Of a stretch of DNA of 64,000 bases, positions 12,988 through 64,000 are shown piece after piece. The notes under the pieces are model-generated. The model was not told where the DNA came from. It saw only the letters and a list, made by a program, of their open reading frames with translations, and ran no database searches. The number at the start of each line of letters is the position of its first letter. Positions within the stretch are counted from its first letter, which is position 1. Both the position numbers and the translations under genes were made by a program. This stretch comes from Macrostomum lignano (taxonomy: Eukaryota), in the NCBI GenBank assembly GCA_002269645.1, contig NIVC01000978.1, positions 124,001 to 188,000 of the forward strand, given 5' to 3'.

Positions 12988-14113
12988 TCAGCGCCGCCTG
13001 GTAGCAGCCATGGCGCTCTGCGGGGCCACCCGAAAGAACAGGCTGTCGCCGCGGGACAGGCCGCCAGCCAGTTTTAGCGTCTGCCAGCACTCAACGCTGT
13101 CGGTGTAGGGCACGCACAGGCTGAGCCCGGAGCTGCCACGGATGCAAAGGTTGGTGGACACCACGCCGTAGCGATAGGTCCAGGAGCTCACTAGGAACGA
13201 GGCGATGACTGGGCTCACCTAAAAGTTTGAAGTGGGCGAGGTTTACAAGTCGTGTATGCGCGACTATAGACTTTCTGGACTAGCATTTCAAAGTTATTCA
13301 TAAGTTCACAGGGAGGCTGTGGATGCTGCCGCAAATAAAGGCGACAGTCCACCTGCAGTTAGCGAGATCATAACTGTAACTGTGAGTAACTGTACTCACG
13401 CGAAAGGTAACGCGAAAATTCCTCTCAAGTGATCGCTCTGTCCCAGGCTCTCTCACCTGCTTGACATCCGGGGCGGACCGGTCGGCAATGATGTACTGAT
13501 TAACGGCATAGGCTATGAAACTGGTGGCCCACAGCGCCAGCAGGTCGCCAACAATCGCCACGGTGACGCCGCGGAAGAATCCCGGCATGCCTTCCTCGTT
13601 GAAGATCTCGCGAATGACGCTCAGAATGTTGCCGCGATAGATGGCATCGTGGGAGACGGCGGCAGCCATCTGGCGGACCATGACGGAGTGCAGCGGGTAG
13701 GAGGCGAACACCGCCAGGGAGCGACCGACGCTGGAGTAGCAGCAGCGCTGGGCCATCTGCTTCAGCGAGTTCGCATTGAGCTCCCAGTTCTTCTCGCTGG
13801 CACCGCCGCCGCCGCAGGCTGCCTCAACGCCTCGGAGGGTCAGCTCGCGAATCACCTGGCTGGTCAGCTTGGCCAGCAGGCCGGTGGTCCACAGCGGAAA
13901 CACGCCGCCAACCTCGTCTCGGACCCGGCCGACGTGGCGAAACATGTTCGGATAGAACAGCTTCTGCCGACGGAACAGATTCTTGCCCAGGCTAGGCGGG
14001 TCCGGCTCCCAGCCCAGCTGCACCAGGATGCGGGAGAAGGTTAGTGGATGCACCACCACGGAGCCGGCTAGTTTGGACACATATTCATAGAATGGATCGC
14101 CGCTGGCTGCCAT
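12988..14113 (-). CDS. MTCH2: Mitochondrial carrier homolog (MTCH1/2-like), 295 aa. Exons 14113-13457 and 13218-12988
   Basis: HPLTFSRILVQLGWEP..LGKNLFRRQKLFYPNMFRH, YPLHSVMVRQMA, GMPGFFRG and the C-terminal ECWQTLKLAGGLSRGDSLFFR match MTCH motifs; phase-0 GT-AG intron. Confidence 0.93.
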
Positions 14114-15519: not shown

Positions 15520-17705
15520 TTTCAGAAAAAATAGCTTAACCGATTTTCTTCAAACTTGCACCATTCAATTAGAAATTTTCCTGTGATAGTCATGCATTGC
15601 GGCTAAGAAATTGCTTGATGCTAAAGGGATTAAATATTCAAAAAGGTCAAGCAGCTTTTTTGACTTGAAATGCATTGTAAGAATGCTAGAGAAAAAACTG
15701 ACTGGTTGAATTCTGATTCTGAAATAGATTGCCTCACACCAGGCTTTTTATTTATTCAGTCTATGTACTGGCTGAATTTTGACACTGAATTGAATTGCAT
15801 CACAGCATTGAAAATACAGTGTGGAAACATAGCATAAGACTTGATTTATATTGTGTAACCATATTGCTAACTCTAATAGAGACTGGTACTGACTTGCCTA
15901 AGAAATTTATTATCATAACTGACTTGGTGAGTGTTGAATTATAAATTCAATGATAGATAGCCTAGATGTTAACATACTGAACTGCTAATGCAGCAACCTA
16001 GGTTTGAATCTTAGTAATGTACTAGAAATCTAGTGCCCCCCTTTGGGGTAGACAATAAGAAAAGGGCAAAATTTATTTATTTTAATTCTGGTAGCGATTA
16101 GTATGGTGTCATTGGTAACAATAAGCATGATGTCAAAGTATGACTACACTTAAAAAAACTTTCAAACCATTTATAAAATTGCAAATCCACATTGTAGCTA
16201 CCAATAATTCCCCAATCAGGTTTGCAATAATCTCCAGTCAGGTTTGCAATTATTCCAGTCAGGTTTGAAATGATCCTAGTCAGGTTTGCAATTATCCCAG
16301 TTGGGTTTGAAATGATCCCAGTCAGGTTTGCAATTATCCCAGTTGGGTTTGAAATGATCCCAGTCAGGTTTGCAATTATCCCAGTCGGGTTTGAAATGAT
16401 CCCAGTCAGGTTTGCAATTATCCCAGTTGGGTTTGAAATGATCCCAGTCAGGTTTGCAATTATCCCAGTTGGGTTTGAAATGATCCCAGTCAGTTTTGCA
16501 ATTATCCTAGTCAGGTTTAAAATGATCCTAGTCAGGTTTGCAATTATCCCAGTCAGGTTTGCAATTATCCCCCAATCGGGTTTAAAATGATCCTAATCGA
16601 GTTTGCAATTATCCCCCAATCAAGGTTGAAATGATCCCAGTCATGTTTTTAATGATCCCAGTGAGGTTTGCAATTGTCCCCCAATCAGGTTTGAAATGGT
16701 CCTAGTCAGATTTGCAATGATCCCAGTCAGGTTTGAAATGATCCATGTCTGGTTTGCAATAATCCCCTAGTCAGGTTTTCAATGATCTCCCAGTCTGGTT
16801 TGCAATGATTGCCCAGTCAGGTTTGCAATGATCCCTTATTTAGGCTTGCAATAATCCCCTAGTCAAGTTTAAAATGATCCCCCAGTCAGGTTTACAATGT
16901 TCCCATTCAGGTTTGCAATGATCCTAGCAGGTTTGCAAGAATCCTAGTCAGGTTTGCAATGATGCCCGAGTCAGGTTTAAAATGATCCCAGTCAGGTTTG
17001 CAATGATCCCTTAGTCATTTTTATAATGATCCCTCTAATTCAATAACAGTTTTCTCATCTAGTGCAATAATAGTTTTCATATCTTATGCAATAATAGTTT
17101 TGTCATCAAGTGCAATAATTGTTTTTAATCAAATTATTTAAATATTTTATAACTTTTAATAAAAAAGTTTACACTACAAAGATTTGAACCCTGCCCACTG
17201 CATTAGCACTCCAATCTCTTCATATCTAGGCTAGCTCTCATTGAATTTATAAATGAATTGTAGCACTTATATAATTCATCACTCACATGAAGCAGTTATG
17301 ACATAATCAATTTCTCAGCCAGTCAATGTCAGTCTTAGTTATTAAAATGAACAATATATTATGCGATATAAATCAATTATTGTGCTAGATGCTTCCACAC
17401 TGCATTTTCAATACTGTGATACAATTTAATTCAGTGTCAAAATTTAGCCAGTACACAGACTGAATAAATAAAAAGCCTATTGTGATTTAATCTATTTCAA
17501 AATCAGAATTTAACTAGTTGGTTTTTTCTCTAGCATTCTTACAATGTATTTCAAGCAAAAAAGCTGCTTGACCTTTGCAAAAAGCATATTTTTTGAATAT
17601 TTAATCCCTTTAGCATCAAGCAATTTCTTAGCCACAATGCATATACAATCATAGAAAAATTTCTAATTGAATGGTGCAAGTTTGAAGAAAATTGGTCATA
17701 CATGC
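15520..17705. mobile_element. Foldback-like non-autonomous element: ~500-bp imperfect inverted arms (~15520-16020 and ~17175-17705) enclosing a minisatellite
   Basis: 15545 ttcttcaaacttgcaccattcaattagaaatttt is the reverse complement of 17655-17690. Similarity continues inward with increasing divergence. Ends and TSD not defined. Confidence 0.75.
16205..17035. repeat. 21/42-bp minisatellite (cccagtcaggtttgcaatgat)
   Basis: Tandem units; 14-aa periodic ORF 16270..16590. Confidence 0.92.
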
Positions 17706-18099
17706 CCAACCTCAAAATTTCACCTATCCAGTGCGACTTAGTTTTGTCCAGATTTGCAACTTACCTATGCACCACCACACTGAAAGACTGGGGGGGGGGG
17801 TAGCACGCGTTGTGTGCTTATTGAAAAATGGAAGTACCTCATTTCTCTTCCCTTTTCCTACCTTCACTCTCTTTCCCGATTGATTTATCATTCACTTGTT
17901 CACTTATATACAGTACTAAACTGCATTGTAGCCTGTACCCTGTAGGCTATACTCCCTACATACTGTACTGTGTGTCTGGCAAACTAACTTGTATATATAC
18001 ACTCATATGTACTTGTATATATACACCTATATATATATATAGGTGTACATTCTTTGAGCCATTATATACTTCACTTAAAGATAGACCTGTACCTGACTA

Positions 18100-18460
18100 T
18101 GTATTGAATCTTGCACATGAATGGGATGAAAATGGTCATGAAGACTATTCCATCAACTAGTGTCCCCTTTCTGCAGCTGAAGAGCGAAAGCCATTGCTCT
18201 TTACACAATGGAAACTTGGTCATGTAACTCCTGGAGAAGTTAATGATTGTTGTGGTGCGCATTGGATATTAGAAGAAAATTTACCAGCAATCTTAAGTGC
18301 AGTCTGGGGGATCAGGTGATGGTGCAGCTGCAGCACATTCAAGGGAACTAAAAGCACCACCATTCCAATGTTCAGCAAGCTTACACAGAGAAGGACTGTT
18401 AATGGCAGTGCAAAATCCAGAGGTTGTAGCTTTTAACAGAGATCTATATATGCAGAATGC
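18100..18460 (+). mobile_element. Possible degenerate hAT (Buster/Charlie-type) transposase fragment
   Basis: GDGAAAA..ELKAP..CSASLHREGL resembles hAT 'TDGAAAM..LK..AP....HC.IHREAL'; stops and frameshifts present. Confidence 0.4.
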
Positions 18461-18859
18461 AAAAAAATTGAAATTCATGGTGCAGATGCAACGACATTAT
18501 TCTTCTCGAGTAATGTCAGCTGAGAAGCTGTTTTTGAAATAAAGAAGAAACTAGAAGTCTTGAGACAGAATTTGTACAATGGCGCATTGCTCATGCTGAA
18601 TCTATTGCTATAGAATCTTGCCTATCAACTGATGCTGGTACTGAAGTGCGGATCCAACCACAACACAGCCAACACAGCCAATGGACTTAGATTCAGAGAC
18701 TGAGACTGATGGCCGAAGAAGTGAGAGTCCTCCAAGAAAAAGATATATTTTTAGTTTATCAAAAGGGATTTTGATGAAATTCAGCCTCATGAAGAGATTT
18801 TGATGAAGTTCAGTTTTATGGAGAGATTTTGATAGAGTTCATTTTTACAGAGAGGATTT

Positions 18860-19660
18860 CAATGGATTTGGCACATTAAATGAGTCAGAGAAGAGAAAGT
18901 ATAGAGAAAAGTGAACAAAAAAGGAGAGATGATAGAAAAGAGAGTAGATATGAGAGAGGACAGATTAGAGATGACAGATGGGAGAGAAGAGTGGAGTAAG
19001 GTAGGAATGAAGAGGGAGAGAGAAGAGAAGAGGAGAGTGGAGATGAAAGGGGAGTTATGAGATAGCAGAGGAGACAAGAGAGATGAGAGAAGAAAGGAGG
19101 GATAAGAGCATACAGCTGAAATAAAAGAGAGGAGAGAGATGAAATATCAGAGATGATAGAGTTAAGAGAAGAAAGTAGTGAGGAGAAAGAAAGAGGGTAA
19201 AGGTAAGAGTGCAGAGAGGACAGATGAAAGATGCGATGAGAAAAGATATGATTGAGAAAATAAGAGAGAGAAGAGATTAGAGATTAGAGAAGAGAAGAGA
19301 CAAAGGGGAGAAGATAGAATCGAGATGGTAGAAAGGAAGCAAGAAAGATGGGAGATAAGAAAGGAGAGGGTATAGGAGATATGATAAACAAGAGCAGAGA
19401 GGAGAGAGAAAAGAGAAGAGAGAGGGTATAGGAGAGACAATAGATAAGTGAGTAGAGATGAGATATGAGAGAGGAGAGAAGAGGGGAGAAATAAGAGAGA
19501 AGAGAGGAGACAGGAGACAGGAGAGGGTACAGACGAAACACGAGGGAGAAGAGATAAATAAAGAGGGAGAGTAATAATAGAGAGTAACGGCGAGAATGCA
19601 GAGAGGAGACACGAGAGTCTGAGTCTGGACAATGGAAGTCAGTTTTTGCAAACAGGGAAA
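18860..19660. repeat. AG-rich low-complexity tract
   Basis: Nearly all purines on +; Ser/Leu-rich minus-strand ORFs are artefacts. Confidence 0.9.
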
Positions 19661-19734
19661 ACAAAATATGGTATTTGAAAGGCTTTACAGAGGATTTTAA
19701 GATAATTTAGAATATGGGATTCAAGACTACTTAG

Positions 19735-20330
19735 TTTCTCTCAATTGCAACTTAGTTCCTCCCGATTGCGACTTAGTTCCTCCCGATTGCAACTTAGTTC
19801 CTCCCGATTGCGACTTAGTTCCTCCCAATTGCGACTTAGTTCCTCCTGATTGCAACTTAGTTCCTCTCGATTGCGACTTAGTTCCTCCCGATTGCGACTT
19901 AGTTCCTCCCGATTGCGACTTAGTTCTTCCTGATTGCGACTTAGTTCCTCCTGATTGCGACATAGTTTTTCCTGATTGCGACTTAGTTCCTCCTGATTGC
20001 GACTTAGTTTTTCCTGATTGCGACTTAGTTCCTCCTGATTGCGACTTAGTTCCTCTCGATTGCGACTTAGTTCTTCCCGATTGCAACTTAGTTCTTCCTG
20101 ATTGCGACTTAGTTCCTCCTGATTGCGACTTAGTTCTTCTCGATTTAGACTTAGTTCCTCCCAATTGTGAATTAGTTCCTCCCAATTGCGACTTAGTTCC
20201 TCCCAATTGCAACTTCTCTTTTCTTTTCTTTTTCTTTCTTTCTCCCCTTTCCCCCCTCTCTCTTCTCCCTCCTTTCTTTTCCCTTTCTCTTCCTCTCCTT
20301 TCTTTCTTCTCCCAATTTTTTGGTTTTTGC
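19735..20330. repeat. 21-bp minisatellite (gattgcgacttagttcctcct) followed by a CT-rich tract
   Basis: About 22 tandem units 19735-20212; 7-aa periodic ORFs. Confidence 0.93.
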
Positions 20331-21477
20331 GTTTTCGATTTTGCGACTTACCTTGGCCAGCGGCCATTTCACCTGTCCAGTTCGGACAGGTCGGACGGGT
20401 GTTGGGCATGTATGAAATTGGTTGAGCCATTTTTTTAATCGATCGTATAGCTACACAACTGTATATATACATACCCTATTGGAAATGTTAAAAACCCGCA
20501 GACACACACTTTAGAAAAGAGTCAAACTATTTTACCGCGCTTTAGGATTATTAGAGATGTTCCAAAAGATCTGCAGTTTTGTTGAAATAAAAATTCACTA
20601 ACTTTCCAAAATCAAAATTGAAATTTCCCAAAATGATAATTCAGAAAAACAAAGTTTATTTGATCAACACTAACTTTTTTTACTTTCAATTTACTGCTTA
20701 AGCAAAAAGTAATACATATATATGTTGTAAAAAGTAGTTTTATTTTTAGTGACTTTTTAGACACTATTAAAATTTTCACTTCTAAATTTTTTTCAAAATT
20801 GAAATTCACTTTAAAATATTTCAAATTCTGGAAAATTGAAATTGAATTTTCAGAACATCTTTAAGCTTAATAAATTACGAGTATATAAGCCCTTTCAACA
20901 GAGGTATTATACCCATTTCCATGTATATGTATTTGCTAGAGCAGCAGCCAGTAAGAAAGCACAGAGCGCATGCGTATGCGATGCGCCTGTGCGCATGTTG
21001 CATTTTAGAAACATTTCAAAAGTGCGCCAGACACTGTCTGCAGTTTTACAACTTTTTCCTATAGGGTATACATACATACCTGGACAACTCATTTATATAG
21101 TATATACATACATGCGCAACCTCCAAAATTTGGTCGGCTATGCGACTTAGTTTTAACAAAAATGTGACATAGTTTTTGGCCAAAAAATGCGACTACATGT
21201 AAAAAACCCTAGCATAAGTAGCGTAAAGCAAAATTAATGCTACTTTGGGTAAATGGCAGGAGTAACTACGACTTTTCTTATTAAGTCAAAATGCCTCATC
21301 AGCTACTTACTACTACTACTTGGGTATTTTTTGAGTGGGCATTTTTGCAACTTCCTTGTTTGGCTGCTAAATTGGTTGGCCAGATCGGCTGACTCAGCCA
21401 ACTGTTGCACATGTATGAGTATATAGGAAATTCTTTTATTGAAATTGAAAGCTTTTATTAATGGACTACTTGAAAAG

Positions 21478-26701: not shown

Positions 26702-27536
26702 GAAGATTAAACTCAGATAATATGGGATCTCTGGCAGGAGGATCAGACACGGTCATTTACATGTAATTAAGACATTCTGTTCCCCATTATTTCTTACACT
26801 AAGTTAAACAGTTTACGTAGGTAAGACCTTGATGTTAAAAAAAACCTAATTACTCGATTATTCGATATGAAACCATGCACGTACTCGAAAAAATATAGAA
26901 ATATAATTTTAGGGTGAAATTACCCCTCAAGTTACCCATATTCGTCTTAATTCTTCGATTGCTAAGTTAAGATTCAATATTTGAAATTATACAACGATGC
27001 ATCATGCATTGCACCGTGCGTGTACACAAACGATACTGTACTGATGTTGGCACGTCCTGGGCCCCCAAACTATTGCGCAACCTCCCTTCTTTCCCTGTGA
27101 TTCCTGCGATGACTCATGTTACCGCTCACCCCACTCCCCAGCGCACCAACCCAACCTCCTTTCTAGCTTTTCTTGCCTGTTACGTAATCCCCTATCATAA
27201 ATCATTTTTCTCCGCTGCGCCCAACCCCAATTTCTCGCCCAATCACAGCGCGGCTTACGAGTAACATAATTAGGATTGCTTGATAACTGAGGTCAATGAC
27301 AAGTCACAGCCTTCAATATCACGCATTACGCTCACGCTCACCGAGGGATCACAGGACTTTAAAGTAAGAGACTGCATGTTTTGAGCCCTGAGCTGCACTT
27401 TTCTACTTTCCGTTTTTGCTTTGCTTTTCTTTCCACTTTCGGCGTTACCGCTTCCTTCCCCTTCTCATTCCGTTTCCTCACGGACCCTTTGGAGCTGTAA
27501 CAATGTACCGCTCGGCGGAGCCCCTTCTCCTTTTCA

Positions 27537-27712
27537 ATAAATCAGCTGCTGTTGCTGTTTCAACACCGGACGGCCTATCGGACTTCTTTGAGACATCCTC
27601 CGGGGTGCTTCAGGGAGATACGCTTGCGCCAATCCTGTTCGTTCTGGTGCTTGACTGGGTGCTGCGGACCGCTCTTCCTACCAACGACGATGGCTTTCTG
27701 TTGCGGCGACGC
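27537..27712 (+). mobile_element. RTE-type LINE reverse-transcriptase fragment
   Basis: VSTPDGLSDFFETSSGVLQGDTLAPILFVLVLDWVLR, the RT 'GV.QG..L.P.LF' motif. Confidence 0.88.
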
Positions 27713-28195
27713 AGGGGTGTCGGAGAGGCGAAGGAGAGGAGAGGAAAGAGGTGAGATGAGAGGAGAGTAGAGAGGTGAGGAGATGAGAGGAGAGGAGAGG
27801 AGAGAATTGAGGAGAGGTGAGGAGATGAGAGGAAAGGAGAGAATTGAGGAGAGGTGAGGAGATGAGAGGAAAGGAGAGAGGTGAGATGTGAGGAGAGGAG
27901 AGAGGTGAGGAGATGAGAGGAGGGGAGAGAGGTCAGGAGAGGTGAGGAGATGAGAGGAAAGGAGAGAGGATAGGAGAGGAGATAGGTGAAGAGATGAGAC
28001 GAGAGAAGAGGAGAGGAGAGGAGAGAAGAGGAGAATATGAGAAGAGAGAGAGAGGTGAGGGAAGAGAGCTGAGAAGAGACACAAACCCTGAGCGGGCAGG
28101 ATTACTATTGTGAAGATTCAAAGGACCCAAGGGCCGGATAGAGAGGCTTAGCGGGCCACATTTGGCCTTCAGGCCGGAGTTTGCCAACCCCTGTT
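27713..28195. mobile_element. hAT-type MITE with expanded AG-rich tract
   Basis: Right end gggccggata..gtttgccaacccctg is hAT-like; same family as 25837-26070; left end uncertain. Confidence 0.55.
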
Positions 28196-28241
28196 TTAGT
28201 ATTTAGCCCTTTTACTTTGGCATCCCTGATCCAACTTCCGA

Positions 28242-28470
28242 GTCCGCCGCAATCCCAAGACTCAAACTGCTGCTGGCGCTGCAACTAAAAGCACTGAAAT
28301 GCCGTCAGATAAAAGAACAAAGAAACAGCGCCAAGAGGAACTGAAGGAGGCAGCCAAGAGATTCAGAAAACTACTGGTCTTGCCCTGGCAATTTTCATTC
28401 ATTTGAGGTATTTACTAAATAAATTGATAGTGCAGCGCCGTTGCGCAATGTTTGAATTAGTTGAAGATTT
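28242..28470 (+). repeat. ~230-bp direct repeat, copy 1 (copy 2 at 29026-29260)
   Basis: gccgcaatccca..cagcgccaagaggaactgaaggaggc..cactaaataaattgatag is shared by both copies. Confidence 0.8.
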
Positions 28471-29018
28471 GCCTGGGCTGCCTTTCGTTCTGTGAGGGCA
28501 GTCCTGCAGTCCGAGTCCCTGCCTGACCGCCAGAGGGCGGCGCTGTTCCAGGCGGTGATTGAGACCGTCCTGCTGTACAACGCCGAGACCTGGACGCTGA
28601 TGGAGTTGCTCGAGCAACAAGTTTGATGCGGCGCATGCTGGCCTGCTGTGCGCCGCCTTCAAGATCGGCTACGAGCGAGTGACCATACGCGCGGCTTTGT
28701 ATCGCCGCGCCGGCCTGGTCCGTCCAAGCGACCTGTTGCGCCGTCGGCGACTCCAGCTGGCAGGCCACATCATCCGCGCCCGAGTCGTACTGCCCAGACA
28801 AGCTCTGTTTGTGCCCAGAGCCGGTGCAGGAGGTGCTGCTGCTGACCTTGCAGCACCCTACCGGCGGGGGCAGGCGCGCACAAGGCGCTTCGTCGACTGC
28901 CTGCTGGCTGACCTCGGCGCCCCGGATTCGGCCGACGGCGTGGCGTTCATTCGCGACCTGGCCTTGAGGTGCGCCTTGTGACGCTGAACGCGTATTCTGC
29001 TGTTGTTGTTGTTGTTGT
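28471..29018 (+). mobile_element. RTE-type LINE 3' portion with frameshifts and a (TTG)n tail
   Basis: AWAAFRSVRAVLQSESLPDRQRAALFQAVIETVLLYNAETWTL..RRRRLQLAGHIIRA; tail tgttgttgttgttgttg at 29001-29018. Confidence 0.88.
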
Positions 29019-30868: not shown

Positions 30869-53596
<22,728 letters not shown>

Positions 53597-59432: not shown

Positions 59433-59934
59433 GACATAAGAGAGTGAAGAACAAAACAAATAAATAACAAGTAAGAAAACTCTCACTACTAATTTAATTG
59501 CCAACAAAGCTCTTGAGCGAATGTTCAGCTTATTTTATTTGTAAATAAAAATTATTAGGAAATATTTCATCATTGTCCAATAAAAGAAGCGAAAGCAGAA
59601 CCCATGAACTCTTGTACACTTTTCATTTCTTCATAGCTTTGCATTCAAAAGGTTTTGTTACTATAATTTGTACATGGGTTCGTTTGATTGTTAGCTAGCT
59701 GTGCAATCAGCAAACTGAAGCATTTTGAAATGGAAAGAGCAGCAAAGCGTAAGCAAAGAGGAAACGAATATTGACTGGTGGAGACAAACAGAAACTAGGG
59801 AGAGATTGTGGGAGAATCCAGACACTGAGAGGGAGGGGGATGGGGGAGAGTGAGAGAGCAGAGAAAATGGGGGACATGGAGATACCGATTGTAGAGAGAG
59901 AGAAGGAGATTGGGGAGAGGGGGATCAGAAGAGG

Positions 59935-61180
59935 GGGAGAGGGGAGCAGGAGAGGGGAGCAGGAGAGGGGAGCAGGAGAGGGGAGCAGGAGAGAGCAGGA
60001 GAGGGGAGCAGGAGAGGGGAGCAGGAGAGAGCAGGAGAGGGGAGCAGGAGAGGGGAGCAGGAGAGAGTAGGAGAGGGGAGCAGGAGAGGGGAGCAGGAGA
60101 GAGTAGGAGAGGGGAGCAGGAGAGGGGAGCAGGAGAGGGGAGCAGGAGAGGGGAGCAGGAGAGAGCAGGAGAGGGGAGCAGGAGAGGGAGCAGGAGAGAG
60201 CAGGAGAGGGGAGCAGGAGAGGGGAGCAGGAGAGGGGAGCAGGAGACAGTAGGAGAGGGGAGCAGGAGAGGGGAGCAGGAGAGGGAGCAGGAGAGGGGAG
60301 CAGGAGAGGGGAGCAGGAGAGGGGAGCAGGAGAGAGCAGGAGAGGGGAGCAGGAGAGGGGAGCAGGAGAGGGGAGCAGGAGAGGGGAGCAGGAGAGAGTA
60401 GGAGAGGGGAGCAGGAGAGGGGAGCAGGATAGGGGAGCAGGAGAGGGGAGCAGGAGAGGGGAGCAGGAGAGAGCAGGAGAGGGGAGCAGGAGAGGGGAGC
60501 AGGAGAGGGGAGCAGGAGAGAGCAGGAGAGGGGAGCAGGAGAGGGGAGCAGGAGAGGGGAGCAGGAGAGAGCAGGAGAGGGGAGCAGGAGAGGGGAGCAG
60601 GAGAGGGGAGCAGGAGAGAGCAGGAGAGGGGAGCAGGAGAGGGGAGCAGGAGAGAGCAGGAGAGGGGAGCAGGAGAGGGGAGCAGGAGAGAGTAGGAGAG
60701 GGGAGCAGGAGAGGGGAGCAGGAGAGGGGAGCAGGAGAGAGTAGGAGAGGGGAGCAGGAGAGAGGAGCAGGAGAGGGGAGCAGGAGAGGGAGCAGGAGAG
60801 GGAGCAGGAGAGGGGAGCAGGAGAGGGGAGCAGGAGAGAGCAGGAGAGGGGAGCAGGAGAGGGGAGCAGGAGAGAGCAGGAGAGGGGAGCAGGAGAGGGG
60901 AGCAGGAGAGGGGAGCAGGAGAGAGTAGGAGAGGGGAGCAGGAGAGGGGAGCAGGAGAGGGGAGCAGGAGAGAGCAGGAGAGGGGAGCAGGAGAGGGGAG
61001 CAGGAGAGAGTAGGAGAGGGGAGCAGGAGAGAGCAGGAGAGGGGAGCAGGAGAGAGCAGGAGAGGGAGCAGGAGAGGGGAGCAGGAGAGGGAGCAGGAGA
61101 GGGGAGCAGGAGAGGGGAGCAGGAGAGGGGAGCAGGAGAGGGGAGCAGGAGAGAGTAGGAGAGGGGAGCAGGAGAGGGGG
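59935..61180. repeat. Purine-rich compound repeat of 11-13-bp units (gagcaggagaggg)
   Basis: Direct inspection; source of the 427-513 aa SPAPLSC ORFs. Confidence 0.97.
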
Positions 61181-61314
61181 GAGATACCAGGACCTGCGAA
61201 GAAGACACGAAGGCAGAGAATCAGCCGCATGAGGAAGAGATGGAAAGGGTGGAAGAAGAGACGGGAGAGTTACTGCAGGCGGATCCCAGAGCACGCAGGC
61301 CAGGATTGCCGGCA

Positions 61315-64000
61315 TCAGAGTGACGCCTCGCTGCACTCGAGAACCTCCAGGCCTGTTCCTGGCCCCTCAGGCTCCGCCGGAGAAGCCGGTCGCCGCTGCC
61401 GCTGCTGCTGTCGGTGCTCGTAGCCGATGGTCGCCCAAATCGGTCTCTCCGTGGCGGTCAGCTGACTGGCCAACAACAGCTGCTGCTGAGACTGGGCTGA
61501 GCGCAGACTCTGCAGAGTCCGGAGAGAGTTTCTCCTGGGATCTGAGAGCAGCAGCTGCTGCTGATGCTGATGATGGTGAGGCCGCTGGCAGCCACAGCTG
61601 CCGCCGTCCAACCAGCTTGGCGGCACCTGCTCCGGCGTAGAGAAACCGGCGGAGTCGGACTGGCCGCTAGGAGGTCGCCGCCGGAACCGAAATCTGGCCG
61701 CCGCCGACGCCGGCCGCTGAACCGGCATCCGGTAGAACAGCTGGTCCCAGAAGTCGCGCTGTCCAAACCGCAGCACCACCGCGGCGGCGGCGCCCGAACC
61801 GCCTGGCAGGGTCGGCCAGCGGGACAGCATTGACGTGGACAACGATGTCGGTTTGGCGGGCGTCGGCGGCTGCGGCGGCACCGCCACCACGCAGACGAGG
61901 CGTCGGCGGGAGAGCGGCTCTCCTAGGCAGTCGGCGGCCGCGGCGAACAGCCCGCGCATCTCCGCGTCGGCCGCGAAGCTCGGCGTCACCACGGCGACAA
62001 CTCGTCGACTGGTGGCGATGACCTCGGCGACAGTCGGGAAAGCCGGCAGGCCCGGCAAGCGGGCGCGCTGGTGGCAGCACAGCGAGTGCCCGCGGCGCAG
62101 CAGCTCGGAGGCCAGCTCGCCGGACACCCAGTCGCCGTCTGTCGGGTGGAACAGCAGGCAGGCATCGCAGCGCTTGCCCTCGCCCGGACAGTCGTCCCTG
62201 TCCAGCGGGTGGAAGCCCCAGCGGGCGTAGAGGCGCACCCGGACGGAGGCGGCCAGCAGCAGCAGGAGGCCGGCCGCGGCCGCCGCGGCTGCCACCAACA
62301 GGAGCGACGCCCCGACGCCGCAGGCCAGCAGGCGGGCGATGAACAGGCGACGCCGCGAGGCCTCCGAGGCGGACGACATTGACGACGAAGTCGAAGAAGA
62401 AGCGGACTTCGGCGGAGTGTCCGGACAGAGGTCCCGTGGCGACAGGCGCCGCAGCTGCCGGCCAGTCAGGCGACGTGGCGAAGCGCAGCGAGCGTCGGCA
62501 TCGGAGCCGCGGCTGGCGAGCCAGTCCGGCAGCCAGGCCGTGCCGGCGCAGTCACAACGCCACGGGTTGCCATGGAGACGGATGTCGCGAAGCCGCCAGA
62601 GGTGCGTCAGGCTGGCGACCCGGGGATCGAGCCGGGCAAGGCGGTTGTTCTGAAAGCAGACGGGGTTGCTTGCTTTCGATTCAGTGAGGTTCTGATTGCG
62701 ATTGTGTCCGGGTGAAAGTACGAGGGGCATCCCAGAAGTCCGTTCAGTATGTGCCTTTTTTACCATAAACGACGAGTGAAGAGCTCAACCGCTCACGGTT
62801 AAGTTTTTAAACTTTCCTGTTGCACTGTTGCGTTTTTTCGGTGACTGGACGGACTTTTGGGGTGCCCCTCGTATGTGTGCCATGGCCGGGAGACTCTCGT
62901 TCCATGCGGGCTCAAATTTCGGCCATTGTTTAACTTAGCAACATGCTAAACAATATGGCTACACTCTAAGGCTACGAACCCCAGGAGTGACATTGCATAT
63001 GGCTACAAATCCAGGAGTGACATTGCATATGGCTACAAATCCAGGAGTGACATTGCATATGGCTACAAACCCGGGAGTGACATTGCATATGGCTACAAAC
63101 CCGGGAGTGACATTGCATATGGCTACAAACCCGGGAGTGACATTGCATATGGCTACAAACCCGGGAGTGACATTGCATATGGCTACAAACCCGGGAGTGA
63201 CATTGCATATGGCTACAAACCCAGGAGTGACATTGCATATGGCTACAAACCCAGGAGTGACATTGCATATGGCTACAAAGCTCATTTGCTGAAAATGATG
63301 AGCAAATAAAGAAGCTGATTTGGTATTTAAAATCCTTGGACTTTGTCAGCGGGTACGTGGATTTCGGGCCAAAGATCTCAGCCACTCGCCTGCAAGTCCA
63401 GCAGTTCCAGACGCTCCAGGCGGCTCAAAAATTTCACCGGCAGCTCCTCGAGTCCGGTGTCACTCAAGACGAGCGACTCAGCGTTGCGAAACACGTCGGG
63501 CATGCCCGGCAGGCTGGCGGGCAGCTGGCCACCGCTGAAGTTGAACCGGTAGGCGAAGCCATCGCCGAGGCGCGGCAGCTCACGCCGGTGCGGCAGCCGG
63601 TCCAGCCGAGCCCCGAGCAGTCAACGCTCACCGCGCGTCGCCAGGGCTCAACCGAGCAGGCGCACCTGTTGCCGACGCACCGGTCGGTGCAGACCAGATC
63701 CGAGCGCGGGTCCAGCTCGAGCCGGTAGCCGGCCGAGTAGATTATACGTCCAAGTAGATTCGGGGGGCTGTGACACGGTGGCAGCACCGTGTACTTCAAC
63801 AGCAAGCTGCTGATATTGCCCGCTGACGAGTTGTACAGTCGGTAGTCTCTGCAGTCGCAGCTGAGCGGGTTGCCAGCCAGATTTGAGAACACCAGAGCAC
63901 TCCGCTCGCCCAGCTGTCTGATCACCTCGCCATCGATTTCCCAACCGTCCAGGAGGTCCGTCAGGCTGACGATTCGGTTCTGCGACAAGCTGATCTCCAG
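61315..64000 (-). CDS. Toll-like receptor of multiple-cysteine-cluster (protostome) type, 3' part. Exons >64000-63390 (one-base frameshift at ~63600) and 62649-61315
   Basis: LRR (LEISLSQNRI), LRRCT (GNPLSCDC..CHSPPNLLG), LRRNT (CTDRC..CAC..VDCSGLG), LRRs (LELLDLQ/NNRLARL), LRRCT (GNPWRCDC..CASPRRLTG..LC), TM, then TIR (RLYARWGFHPLD..DACLLF..WV..L..G..LCCHQR..LPG..SRRVVAVVTPSF). Confidence 0.88.
62985..63280. repeat. 30-bp minisatellite (ggctacaaacccgggagtgacattgcatat) in the TLR intron
   Basis: About 10 units. Confidence 0.96.

Follow-up and report, generated by a model that had tools for sequence, protein, structure and literature searches.

Exons and domain order of the gene

We analysed a window of 64,000 nucleotides from the flatworm Macrostomum lignano, positions 124001-188000 of contig NIVC01000978.1 (assembly GCA_002269645.1), a contig that runs to 394 kb. 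At the far end of the window, on the minus strand from 64000 to 61315, lie two exons that encode, in order, a leucine-rich repeat (LRR) region, an LRRCT cap, an LRRNT cap, three to four further LRRs, a second LRRCT, a transmembrane helix, a TIR domain and a low-complexity tail. We read these exons as the 3' two-thirds of a genuine Toll-like receptor (TLR) gene of the Toll type, with multiple cysteine clusters, that is absent from the GenBank gene set, and we place the probability of this reading at roughly 0.85. What is new is a Toll receptor gene in a phylum reported to be without TLRs, and it bears on the timing of TLR loss in flatworms.

The penultimate coding exon (63390-64000, minus strand), which is cut by the window edge, holds an LRR, the internal LRRCT, the LRRNT and further LRRs, as recognised from its translation and from a colinear alignment with TLRs. 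Positions 64000-63606 are read in frame 0 and positions 63605-63390 in a shifted frame, whose translation begins LDRLPHRRELPRL, continues through three LRRs and ends in LERLELLDLQ at 63390. The last coding exon (61315-62649, minus strand) is an uninterrupted open reading frame (ORF) of 444 codons and a stop; it starts with NNRLARLDPRV and contains an LRR, the membrane-proximal LRRCT, a Ser-rich linker, the transmembrane helix, the TIR domain and the tail. Between the two exons is a 740-bp intron of the GC-AG type (62650-63389, minus strand), with the donor CAG/GCGAGT at 63389-63384 and the acceptor TTTCAG/AAC, whose AG lies at 62651-62650. Joining the exons restores a perfect LRR, LERLELLDLQNNRLARL, that matches the homologs without a gap. 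A GT-AG alternative is also in frame; it adds nine residues inside the LRR that are seen in no homolog, and we rejected it. The frame runs on to the window edge at base 64000 without closing, homologs in the alignment have approximately 300-350 further N-terminal residues, and the window does not include the N-terminal third of the gene.

Cysteine clusters and LRRs of the ectodomain

The internal LRRCT (63689-63871, minus strand; GNPLSCDC...C76...C104) places C48, C50, C76 and C104, in the numbering of the in-window protein, in columns that are invariant in the TLR alignment, and phmmer matches it to an amphioxus VLR-like LRRCT and to residues 524-620 of Aedes Toll5A. The internal LRRNT that follows (63591-63679, minus strand; C108-x4-C113-x-C115-x12-C128 ... 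LP) spans the frameshift considered below. Its residues C113, P119, C128 and P137 occupy invariant columns, phmmer aligned the segment nrCaCsvepwrravsvdCsGlGLdrlP to a VLR-like LRRNT, and the AlphaFold2 (AF2) model has predicted local distance difference test (pLDDT) values of 75-88 across it. The membrane-proximal LRRCT (62425-62571, minus strand; GNPWRCDC ... RCASP ... LCPD) is supported by phmmer and by AF2 (pLDDT 77-90); against the PDB its matches are the LRRCT of the Nogo receptor (2.4e-8) and residues 710-774 of Drosophila Toll (4lxr, 0.01), and the Pfam LRRCT model scores it at 18.2 bits, under the cut-off of 20. The repeats themselves are recognised by the Pfam models LRR_8 (31.5 bits, cut-off 27) and LRR_4 (29.8 bits).

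The alignment of the in-window protein with TLRs is colinear all the way from the internal LRRCT through the TIR domain. In the nine-sequence TLR alignment all of its cap cysteines, which form two CxC...C...C clusters and one C-x4-C-x-C-x12-C cluster, fall in invariant columns. The AF2 model of the whole in-window protein has pLDDT values of 75-92 over the LRRNT/LRR/LRRCT module, including the site at which the frame was patched, and the best Foldseek match of the ectodomain model in the PDB is the Drosophila Toll-Spatzle complex 4lxr (E 3.6e-10 over 264 columns), with Aedes Toll5A also listed. The layout is that of a multiple-cysteine-cluster (mcc, also P-type or Toll-type) TLR.

Transmembrane helix and TIR domain

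The single transmembrane helix (62248-62346, minus strand; LFIARLLACGVGASLLLVAAAAAAAGLLLLLAA) is a hydrophobic stretch some 33 residues long, with basic residues (RVRLYARW) after it. Its Kyte-Doolittle peak is 2.65 over 19 residues, AF2 models one long helix at model positions 95-144, and the stretch aligns with the transmembrane segments of the homologs. The juxtamembrane motif and the TIR domain occupy 61711-62247 (minus strand). The motif, RVRLYARWGFHPLDRDDCPGEGKRCD, is close to the clade consensus in the alignment; within the TIR domain we recognise box 1 (CDACLLF), box 2 (RARLPG) and box 3 (FW), with insertions of 4 and 11 residues between boxes 2 and 3.

The Pfam TIR model PF01582 scores the domain at 22.1 bits, above its cut-off of 21.3, and TIR_2 gives 22.9 bits, under its cut-off of 28. 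Searched with phmmer against the PDB, the cytoplasmic part matches the TIR domains of TLR15 and TLR2 (5e-7) and of TLR1 and TLR6 (up to 1e-3). A clade hidden Markov model (HMM) built without the Macrostomum sequence detects the domain at 101 bits (E 1e-30) in a six-frame scan of the window, and the same scan finds no second TIR in the window. The AF2 model of the domain, computed from small alignments, has pLDDT values of 76-88 and the beta-alpha order of a TIR domain; in Foldseek its top 48 PDB matches are all TIR domains, among them those of TLR15, TLR1, Hydra TRR-2 and MyD88.

A preliminary description of this DNA had placed internal LRRCT and LRRNT clusters, a membrane-proximal LRRCT, a transmembrane helix and a TIR domain in one spliced gene, and each of these was found where it had been placed, on the minus strand. 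Its assignment of the gene to the mcc architecture of Drosophila Toll agrees with the colinearity, the invariant cap cysteines and the top structural match reported above. It had also called the receptor full: the layout is confirmed and the completeness is not, given the frame that is open at the window edge and the greater length of the homologs.

Relatives and known systems

A HMMER scan of 1.84 billion representative proteins returned 437 matches at E<=1e-3, 78 of them at E<=1e-10, and many consist of a single alignment that takes in the LRRCT, the membrane helix and the TIR domain. When ten of the matches were scanned with Pfam, all ten had a TIR domain, nine had LRR repeats and the tenth had LRR cap modules. 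Matches that carry names include TLR13 and TLR14 of Arenicola marina, a tick "protein toll-like" and an amphioxus protein. No relative found is more than about 40% identical.

A survey of TLRs (PMC8609888) defines the family by a TIR domain, a transmembrane helix and at least one LRR in one sequence, and each of these is found here. Because an LRR, an LRRCT, the transmembrane helix and the TIR domain lie in a single uninterrupted exon (61315-62649), the gene falls within this definition, unlike the TIR-only or LRR-only "TLR-like" proteins of flatworms and Hydra (the Smed-TIR set; TRR-2, 4w8g). Such proteins had been regarded as the flatworm substitute for TLRs. The TIR fold is common to these proteins and to the Macrostomum receptor, and TRR-2 is the fifth Foldseek match.

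Among characterised receptors, Drosophila Toll (Toll-1) and the insect mcc Tolls (4lxr; Aedes Toll5A, 7b1b) have the same order of modules, namely LRRs, LRRCT, LRRNT, a short LRR block, LRRCT, transmembrane helix and TIR domain, and they are alike in box 3 and in the following FW..L.y.lP..rP. They differ in that identity to the Macrostomum protein is only about 24%, boxes 1 and 2 are altered in Macrostomum, and the tail after the TIR domain is unrelated. The Arenicola receptors (UCK81512.1 and UCK81513.1) are among the best named relatives, are colinear with it between the internal LRRCT and the TIR end with every cap cysteine kept, and have the juxtamembrane pattern RV.LYA..WHPF..DEC.GE.K.YD in common with it. 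Their identity to it is 26-27%, they score 45-77 bits on the Pfam TIR models whereas the Macrostomum domain scores 22, and the insertions of 4 and 11 residues between boxes 2 and 3 are a feature of the Macrostomum TIR. By description alone, a further likeness is with the lone TLR of the rotifer Epiphanes senta (clade alpha, PMC8609888), which is likewise a sole survivor in a non-trochozoan spiralian group reported to be free of TLRs.

Among the closest relatives are many LRR-TIR proteins from metagenomes whose sequences stop about three residues past query position 225 (Pfam TIR position 69). This shared end suggests a conserved intron at that point in the eukaryotic genes that encode them; the Macrostomum gene has no intron there.

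Coding signal

Despite a G+C content of 71%, an open frame as long as that of the last exon arose in only 9 of 5000 shuffles. The G+C content by codon position in this exon is 0.70/0.60/0.83, a pattern like that of the neighbouring mitochondrial-carrier gene (0.63/0.44/0.81), and the penultimate exon shows the same kind of periodicity (0.57/0.48/0.80 and 0.75/0.42/0.84). Third-position G+C content (GC3) of the Toll gene, at 0.80-0.85, is similar to that of neighbouring genes.

In all, 647 codons are free of stops, 519 of them downstream of the frameshift. By a simple count, stop-creating changes in this frame amount to 62.7 per unit substitutions per site; if equal rates are assumed, neutral drift beyond about 4.8% substitutions per site should, at 95%, have given rise to a stop. 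This limit is approximately the divergence between two homeologous contigs described below. Therefore any inactivation of the gene was recent, no older than roughly the recent genome duplication, and the locus has been under coding constraint until very recently at least.

Published absence and the missing annotation

The preliminary description had stated that surveys report canonical TLRs as absent from Platyhelminthes, and the literature agrees. The 2021 survey (PMC8609888) lists M. lignano with 0 TLRs and, using the early-branching position of this species, proposes an early loss in Platyhelminthes; a 2023 survey of 85 metazoans (PMC10279657) again found no TLR in the phylum. A planarian review describes TIR-only proteins and MyD88, and no LRR-TIR protein. 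In our search of the literature we found no published report of a TLR from Macrostomum or any other flatworm. The method of the 2021 survey was a TIR HMM search of predicted proteins only. It missed this gene because the gene had never been predicted, and the case shows how TLR surveys of predicted proteins can pass over such a gene.

Two statements in the M. lignano genome paper bear on this omission: the GenBank annotation is transcript-based, with transcripts that overlap repeat annotations dropped, and REAPR judged only 64% of bases error-free in an assembly that had been polished with Pilon. The repeat filter and the REAPR figure thus offer ordinary reasons for the absence of the gene from the gene set and for a possible one-base error. 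The description had raised Macrostomum as a possible host; this is confirmed by the ORF of a mitochondrial carrier (13298-14113), which shows 100% identity to BOX15_Mlig013139g1 of Macrostomum lignano, and by sequence of NIVC01000978.1 that equals the window at 100% over 21 kb. It had also supposed that annotation missed the gene; this proved correct for the GenBank proteome as contained in the collection that we searched. The causes it proposed, namely divergence, the GC-AG intron, repeat-filled introns and the frameshift, are all real features of the locus.

Its further suggestion, that the gene would revise the history of TLR loss in flatworms, is supported by a Toll gene in the species that the 2021 survey lists with none. 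Whether it is alive or only recently dead, a Toll gene that can still be recognised in M. lignano contradicts a loss at the base of the phylum. A loss at the root of Platyhelminthes is an old loss by animal divergence times. A gene lost at that root would not still have 647 stop-free codons, all of its cap cysteines and a foldable TIR, and the inference of TLR loss at the flatworm base needs revision whether or not this copy is functional.

An intact gene, a recent pseudogene or an artefact

The frame is broken at 63605-63607 (minus strand), where, compared with the conserved reading, one base is missing between 63606 and 63605 (CTC GG^C TGG). One added base at 63605/63606 yields VDCSGLGLDRLP, which is the LRRNT consensus, and in the alignment the patched CSGLGLDRLP falls on the CS...L.SLP of the family. 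A short intron at this point in place of a frameshift was ruled out: the homologous residues in the two frames abut, and there is therefore no room for one. The missing base may reflect either a fault of the assembly or a true lesion in the gene.

Several observations weigh against reading the locus as a genuine TLR gene. As assembled, the frame is broken once, at 63605/63606, and the part of the gene in the window thus lacks the unbroken frame looked for in a TLR. On the internal cluster, neither the LRRCT nor the LRRNT model of Pfam scores significantly. In the TIR domain, 20 of the 35 columns conserved at 70% or more are retained; box 1 is CDACLLF instead of YDAFLSY, with the Y/F replaced, box 2 is RARLPG instead of RDFxPG, with the Asp replaced and the Pro-Gly kept, and the W-x-EF motif is lost, with the FW of box 3 kept. 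The extracted domain scores lowest on the clade HMM, at 104 bits; the members reach at least 124, with a median of 216, although their scores are inflated because they were in the training set. By sequence, this TIR diverges further than any other member of its clade. Neither exon is matched by any protein in a collection of 5.8 billion clusters that includes the GenBank M. lignano proteins, and this collection holds no protein model for either exon on NIVC01000978.1 or on the homeologous contig. The word-index searches that gave this result, with the last exon and with part of the ectodomain, returned no Macrostomum protein, their only match being a fish LRR protein. Finally, no relative in the protein collection exceeds about 40% identity, and transcript-sized contigs of approximately 1.1-1.2 kb in the same collection encode relatives of the carrier gene that are 74-77% identical.

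These observations can be accommodated in more than one way. Either the Toll locus would still be functional, with the frameshift a long-read assembly error, or it would be a homeolog damaged after the recent genome duplication. On the second account, which is a real possibility that we hold somewhat below even, the frameshift is genuine, the copy is unexpressed and recently dead, the divergent TIR reflects relaxed constraint, and M. lignano is functionally without TLRs, in line with the surveys, through a loss that was recent and specific to its lineage instead of ancestral to flatworms. The frameshift does persist in a Pilon-polished assembly, but the loss of a lone base from a run of G/C is the kind of consensus error that long reads typically leave. 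That the gene has neither a model nor a close relative in the protein collections would suit a dead copy, yet the repeat filter is a procedural explanation for its absence from GenBank. The TIR is the lowest-scoring of its clade and has lost several consensus residues; however, 6 of 82 homologs, presumably working, keep as few or fewer of them. The redundancy that follows a whole-genome duplication permits one copy to decay, and a homeolog of the region is indeed seen. Set against such decay are the absence of any stop in the 647 codons, the intact G+C periodicity by codon position, and the 519 codons past the frameshift, in which all of the cap cysteines, the transmembrane helix and a foldable TIR are retained.

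It is far less probable, indeed very nearly negligible, that a mis-assembled or contaminant segment from another animal has been joined to a Macrostomum contig. REAPR finds many errors in the Mlig_3_7 assembly, and no Macrostomum relative of the gene was found; but the window, 61 kb of which precede the locus, is identical to the contig wherever this was checked (100% over 21 kb), and the locus has the tandem-repeat load of its neighbourhood (36.7% of the window) and the GC3 bias of the flanking M. lignano genes. Moreover, with a best identity of about 40% to any known TLR, the segment was not copied from the gene of a sequenced organism. We consider it highly probable that a working TLR exists in Macrostomum or existed there until very recently, and we regard the chance that this particular copy is intact in the animal as even.

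Predicted function and significance

The encoded protein would be a type I membrane receptor, with an extracellular LRR solenoid that is split by the LRRCT/LRRNT pair of cysteine caps, a short membrane-proximal LRR block capped by the second LRRCT, and, beyond a single transmembrane helix, a TIR domain on the cytoplasmic side. If it acts as Toll and the TLRs do, ligand-induced dimerisation of the ectodomain would bring two TIR domains together, and the paired domains would attract an adaptor with a TIR domain, for example MyD88, and pass the signal through IRAK/Pelle and TRAF6 to NF-kB or MAPK.

We judge it a little short of an even chance that M. lignano has an intact, expressed Toll receptor in the window copy or its homeolog, and that the last common ancestor of flatworms therefore had Toll signalling, with the loss coming later, inside the phylum and not at its base. 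If so, M. lignano, in which transgenesis and RNAi are available, would be the one flatworm where the function of Toll in immunity and regeneration is testable; a working gene would open Toll biology, including infection, regeneration and stem cells, in a genetically tractable flatworm.

A functional receptor might instead serve in something other than immunity, such as development, cell adhesion or neuronal wiring, in the manner of Drosophila Toll-6, -7 and -8 and 18-wheeler or of the spiralian TLRs that are expressed during development, and its divergent TIR might then signal weakly or through a different adaptor. The mcc-type layout is common to the developmental Tolls, developmental expression of protostome TLRs has been reported (PMC8609888), the TIR boxes are altered, and the absent gene model would be in keeping with transcripts that are scarce or confined to certain stages. 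The sequence holds nothing, however, that separates immune from developmental Tolls, and we consider such a role rather unlikely.

Homeologous contig and flanking features

Window positions 2988-27724 align with NIVC01000906.1:348272-369401 at 91-96% identity and in the same order of genes: IMPDH, a gene of 218 amino acids, the mitochondrial carrier and a UQ_con E2. The two copies encode identical carrier proteins. The copy of this neighbourhood on NIVC01000906.1 belongs to the known duplication of the neopolyploid M. lignano genome. Because the gene order is the same on the homeologous contig, a second copy of the TLR locus is likely, and it is expected near 312-315 kb of NIVC01000906.1. The IMPDH gene model has 276 amino acids on one homeolog and 554 on the other (positions 15749-21130 of the fetched NIVC01000906.1 locus and 16035-21126 of the fetched NIVC01000978.1 locus), and one IMPDH copy is truncated or else mis-annotated, a hint that broken models are common in this assembly.

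The Toll gene ends in a low-complexity tail of about 130 amino acids (61318-61710, minus strand) that is rich in Q, R, S and P, has a weaker GC3 signal (0.73) and has no detectable homology. Beginning 130 bp past the stop, in likely 3' UTR or flank, a 13-nt unit, GGAGAGGGGAGCA, is repeated about 100 times in an array (59912-61184). The nearest AATAAA after the stop on the minus strand is only at 59539, and the 3' UTR may therefore extend through the array. A repeat ORF of 507 amino acids just downstream of the stop (59707-61230) has no protein on record, and no coding-like segment was found on either strand between 53 and 61 kb of the window.

Tandem repeats make up their 36.7% of the window, as called by Tandem Repeats Finder, in about 50 arrays, many of them inside introns, where they give rise to long spurious ORFs in several frames. 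One such array lies in the intron of the Toll gene (62970-63279) and consists of 10.3 copies of a 30-bp unit with 97% matches. At 27416-29000 are pieces of ORF that resemble a non-LTR reverse transcriptase (...LQGDTLAPILFVLVLDWVLR... and ...AETWTL...), with no Pfam match at E<=0.01. A LAP/Scribble-like gene of many exons occupies approximately 35800-52600 on the plus strand, with LRR exons at 37143-37478 and 43127-43561, PDZ exons at 48953-49273 and 51057-51830, and repeat-filled introns between its exons.

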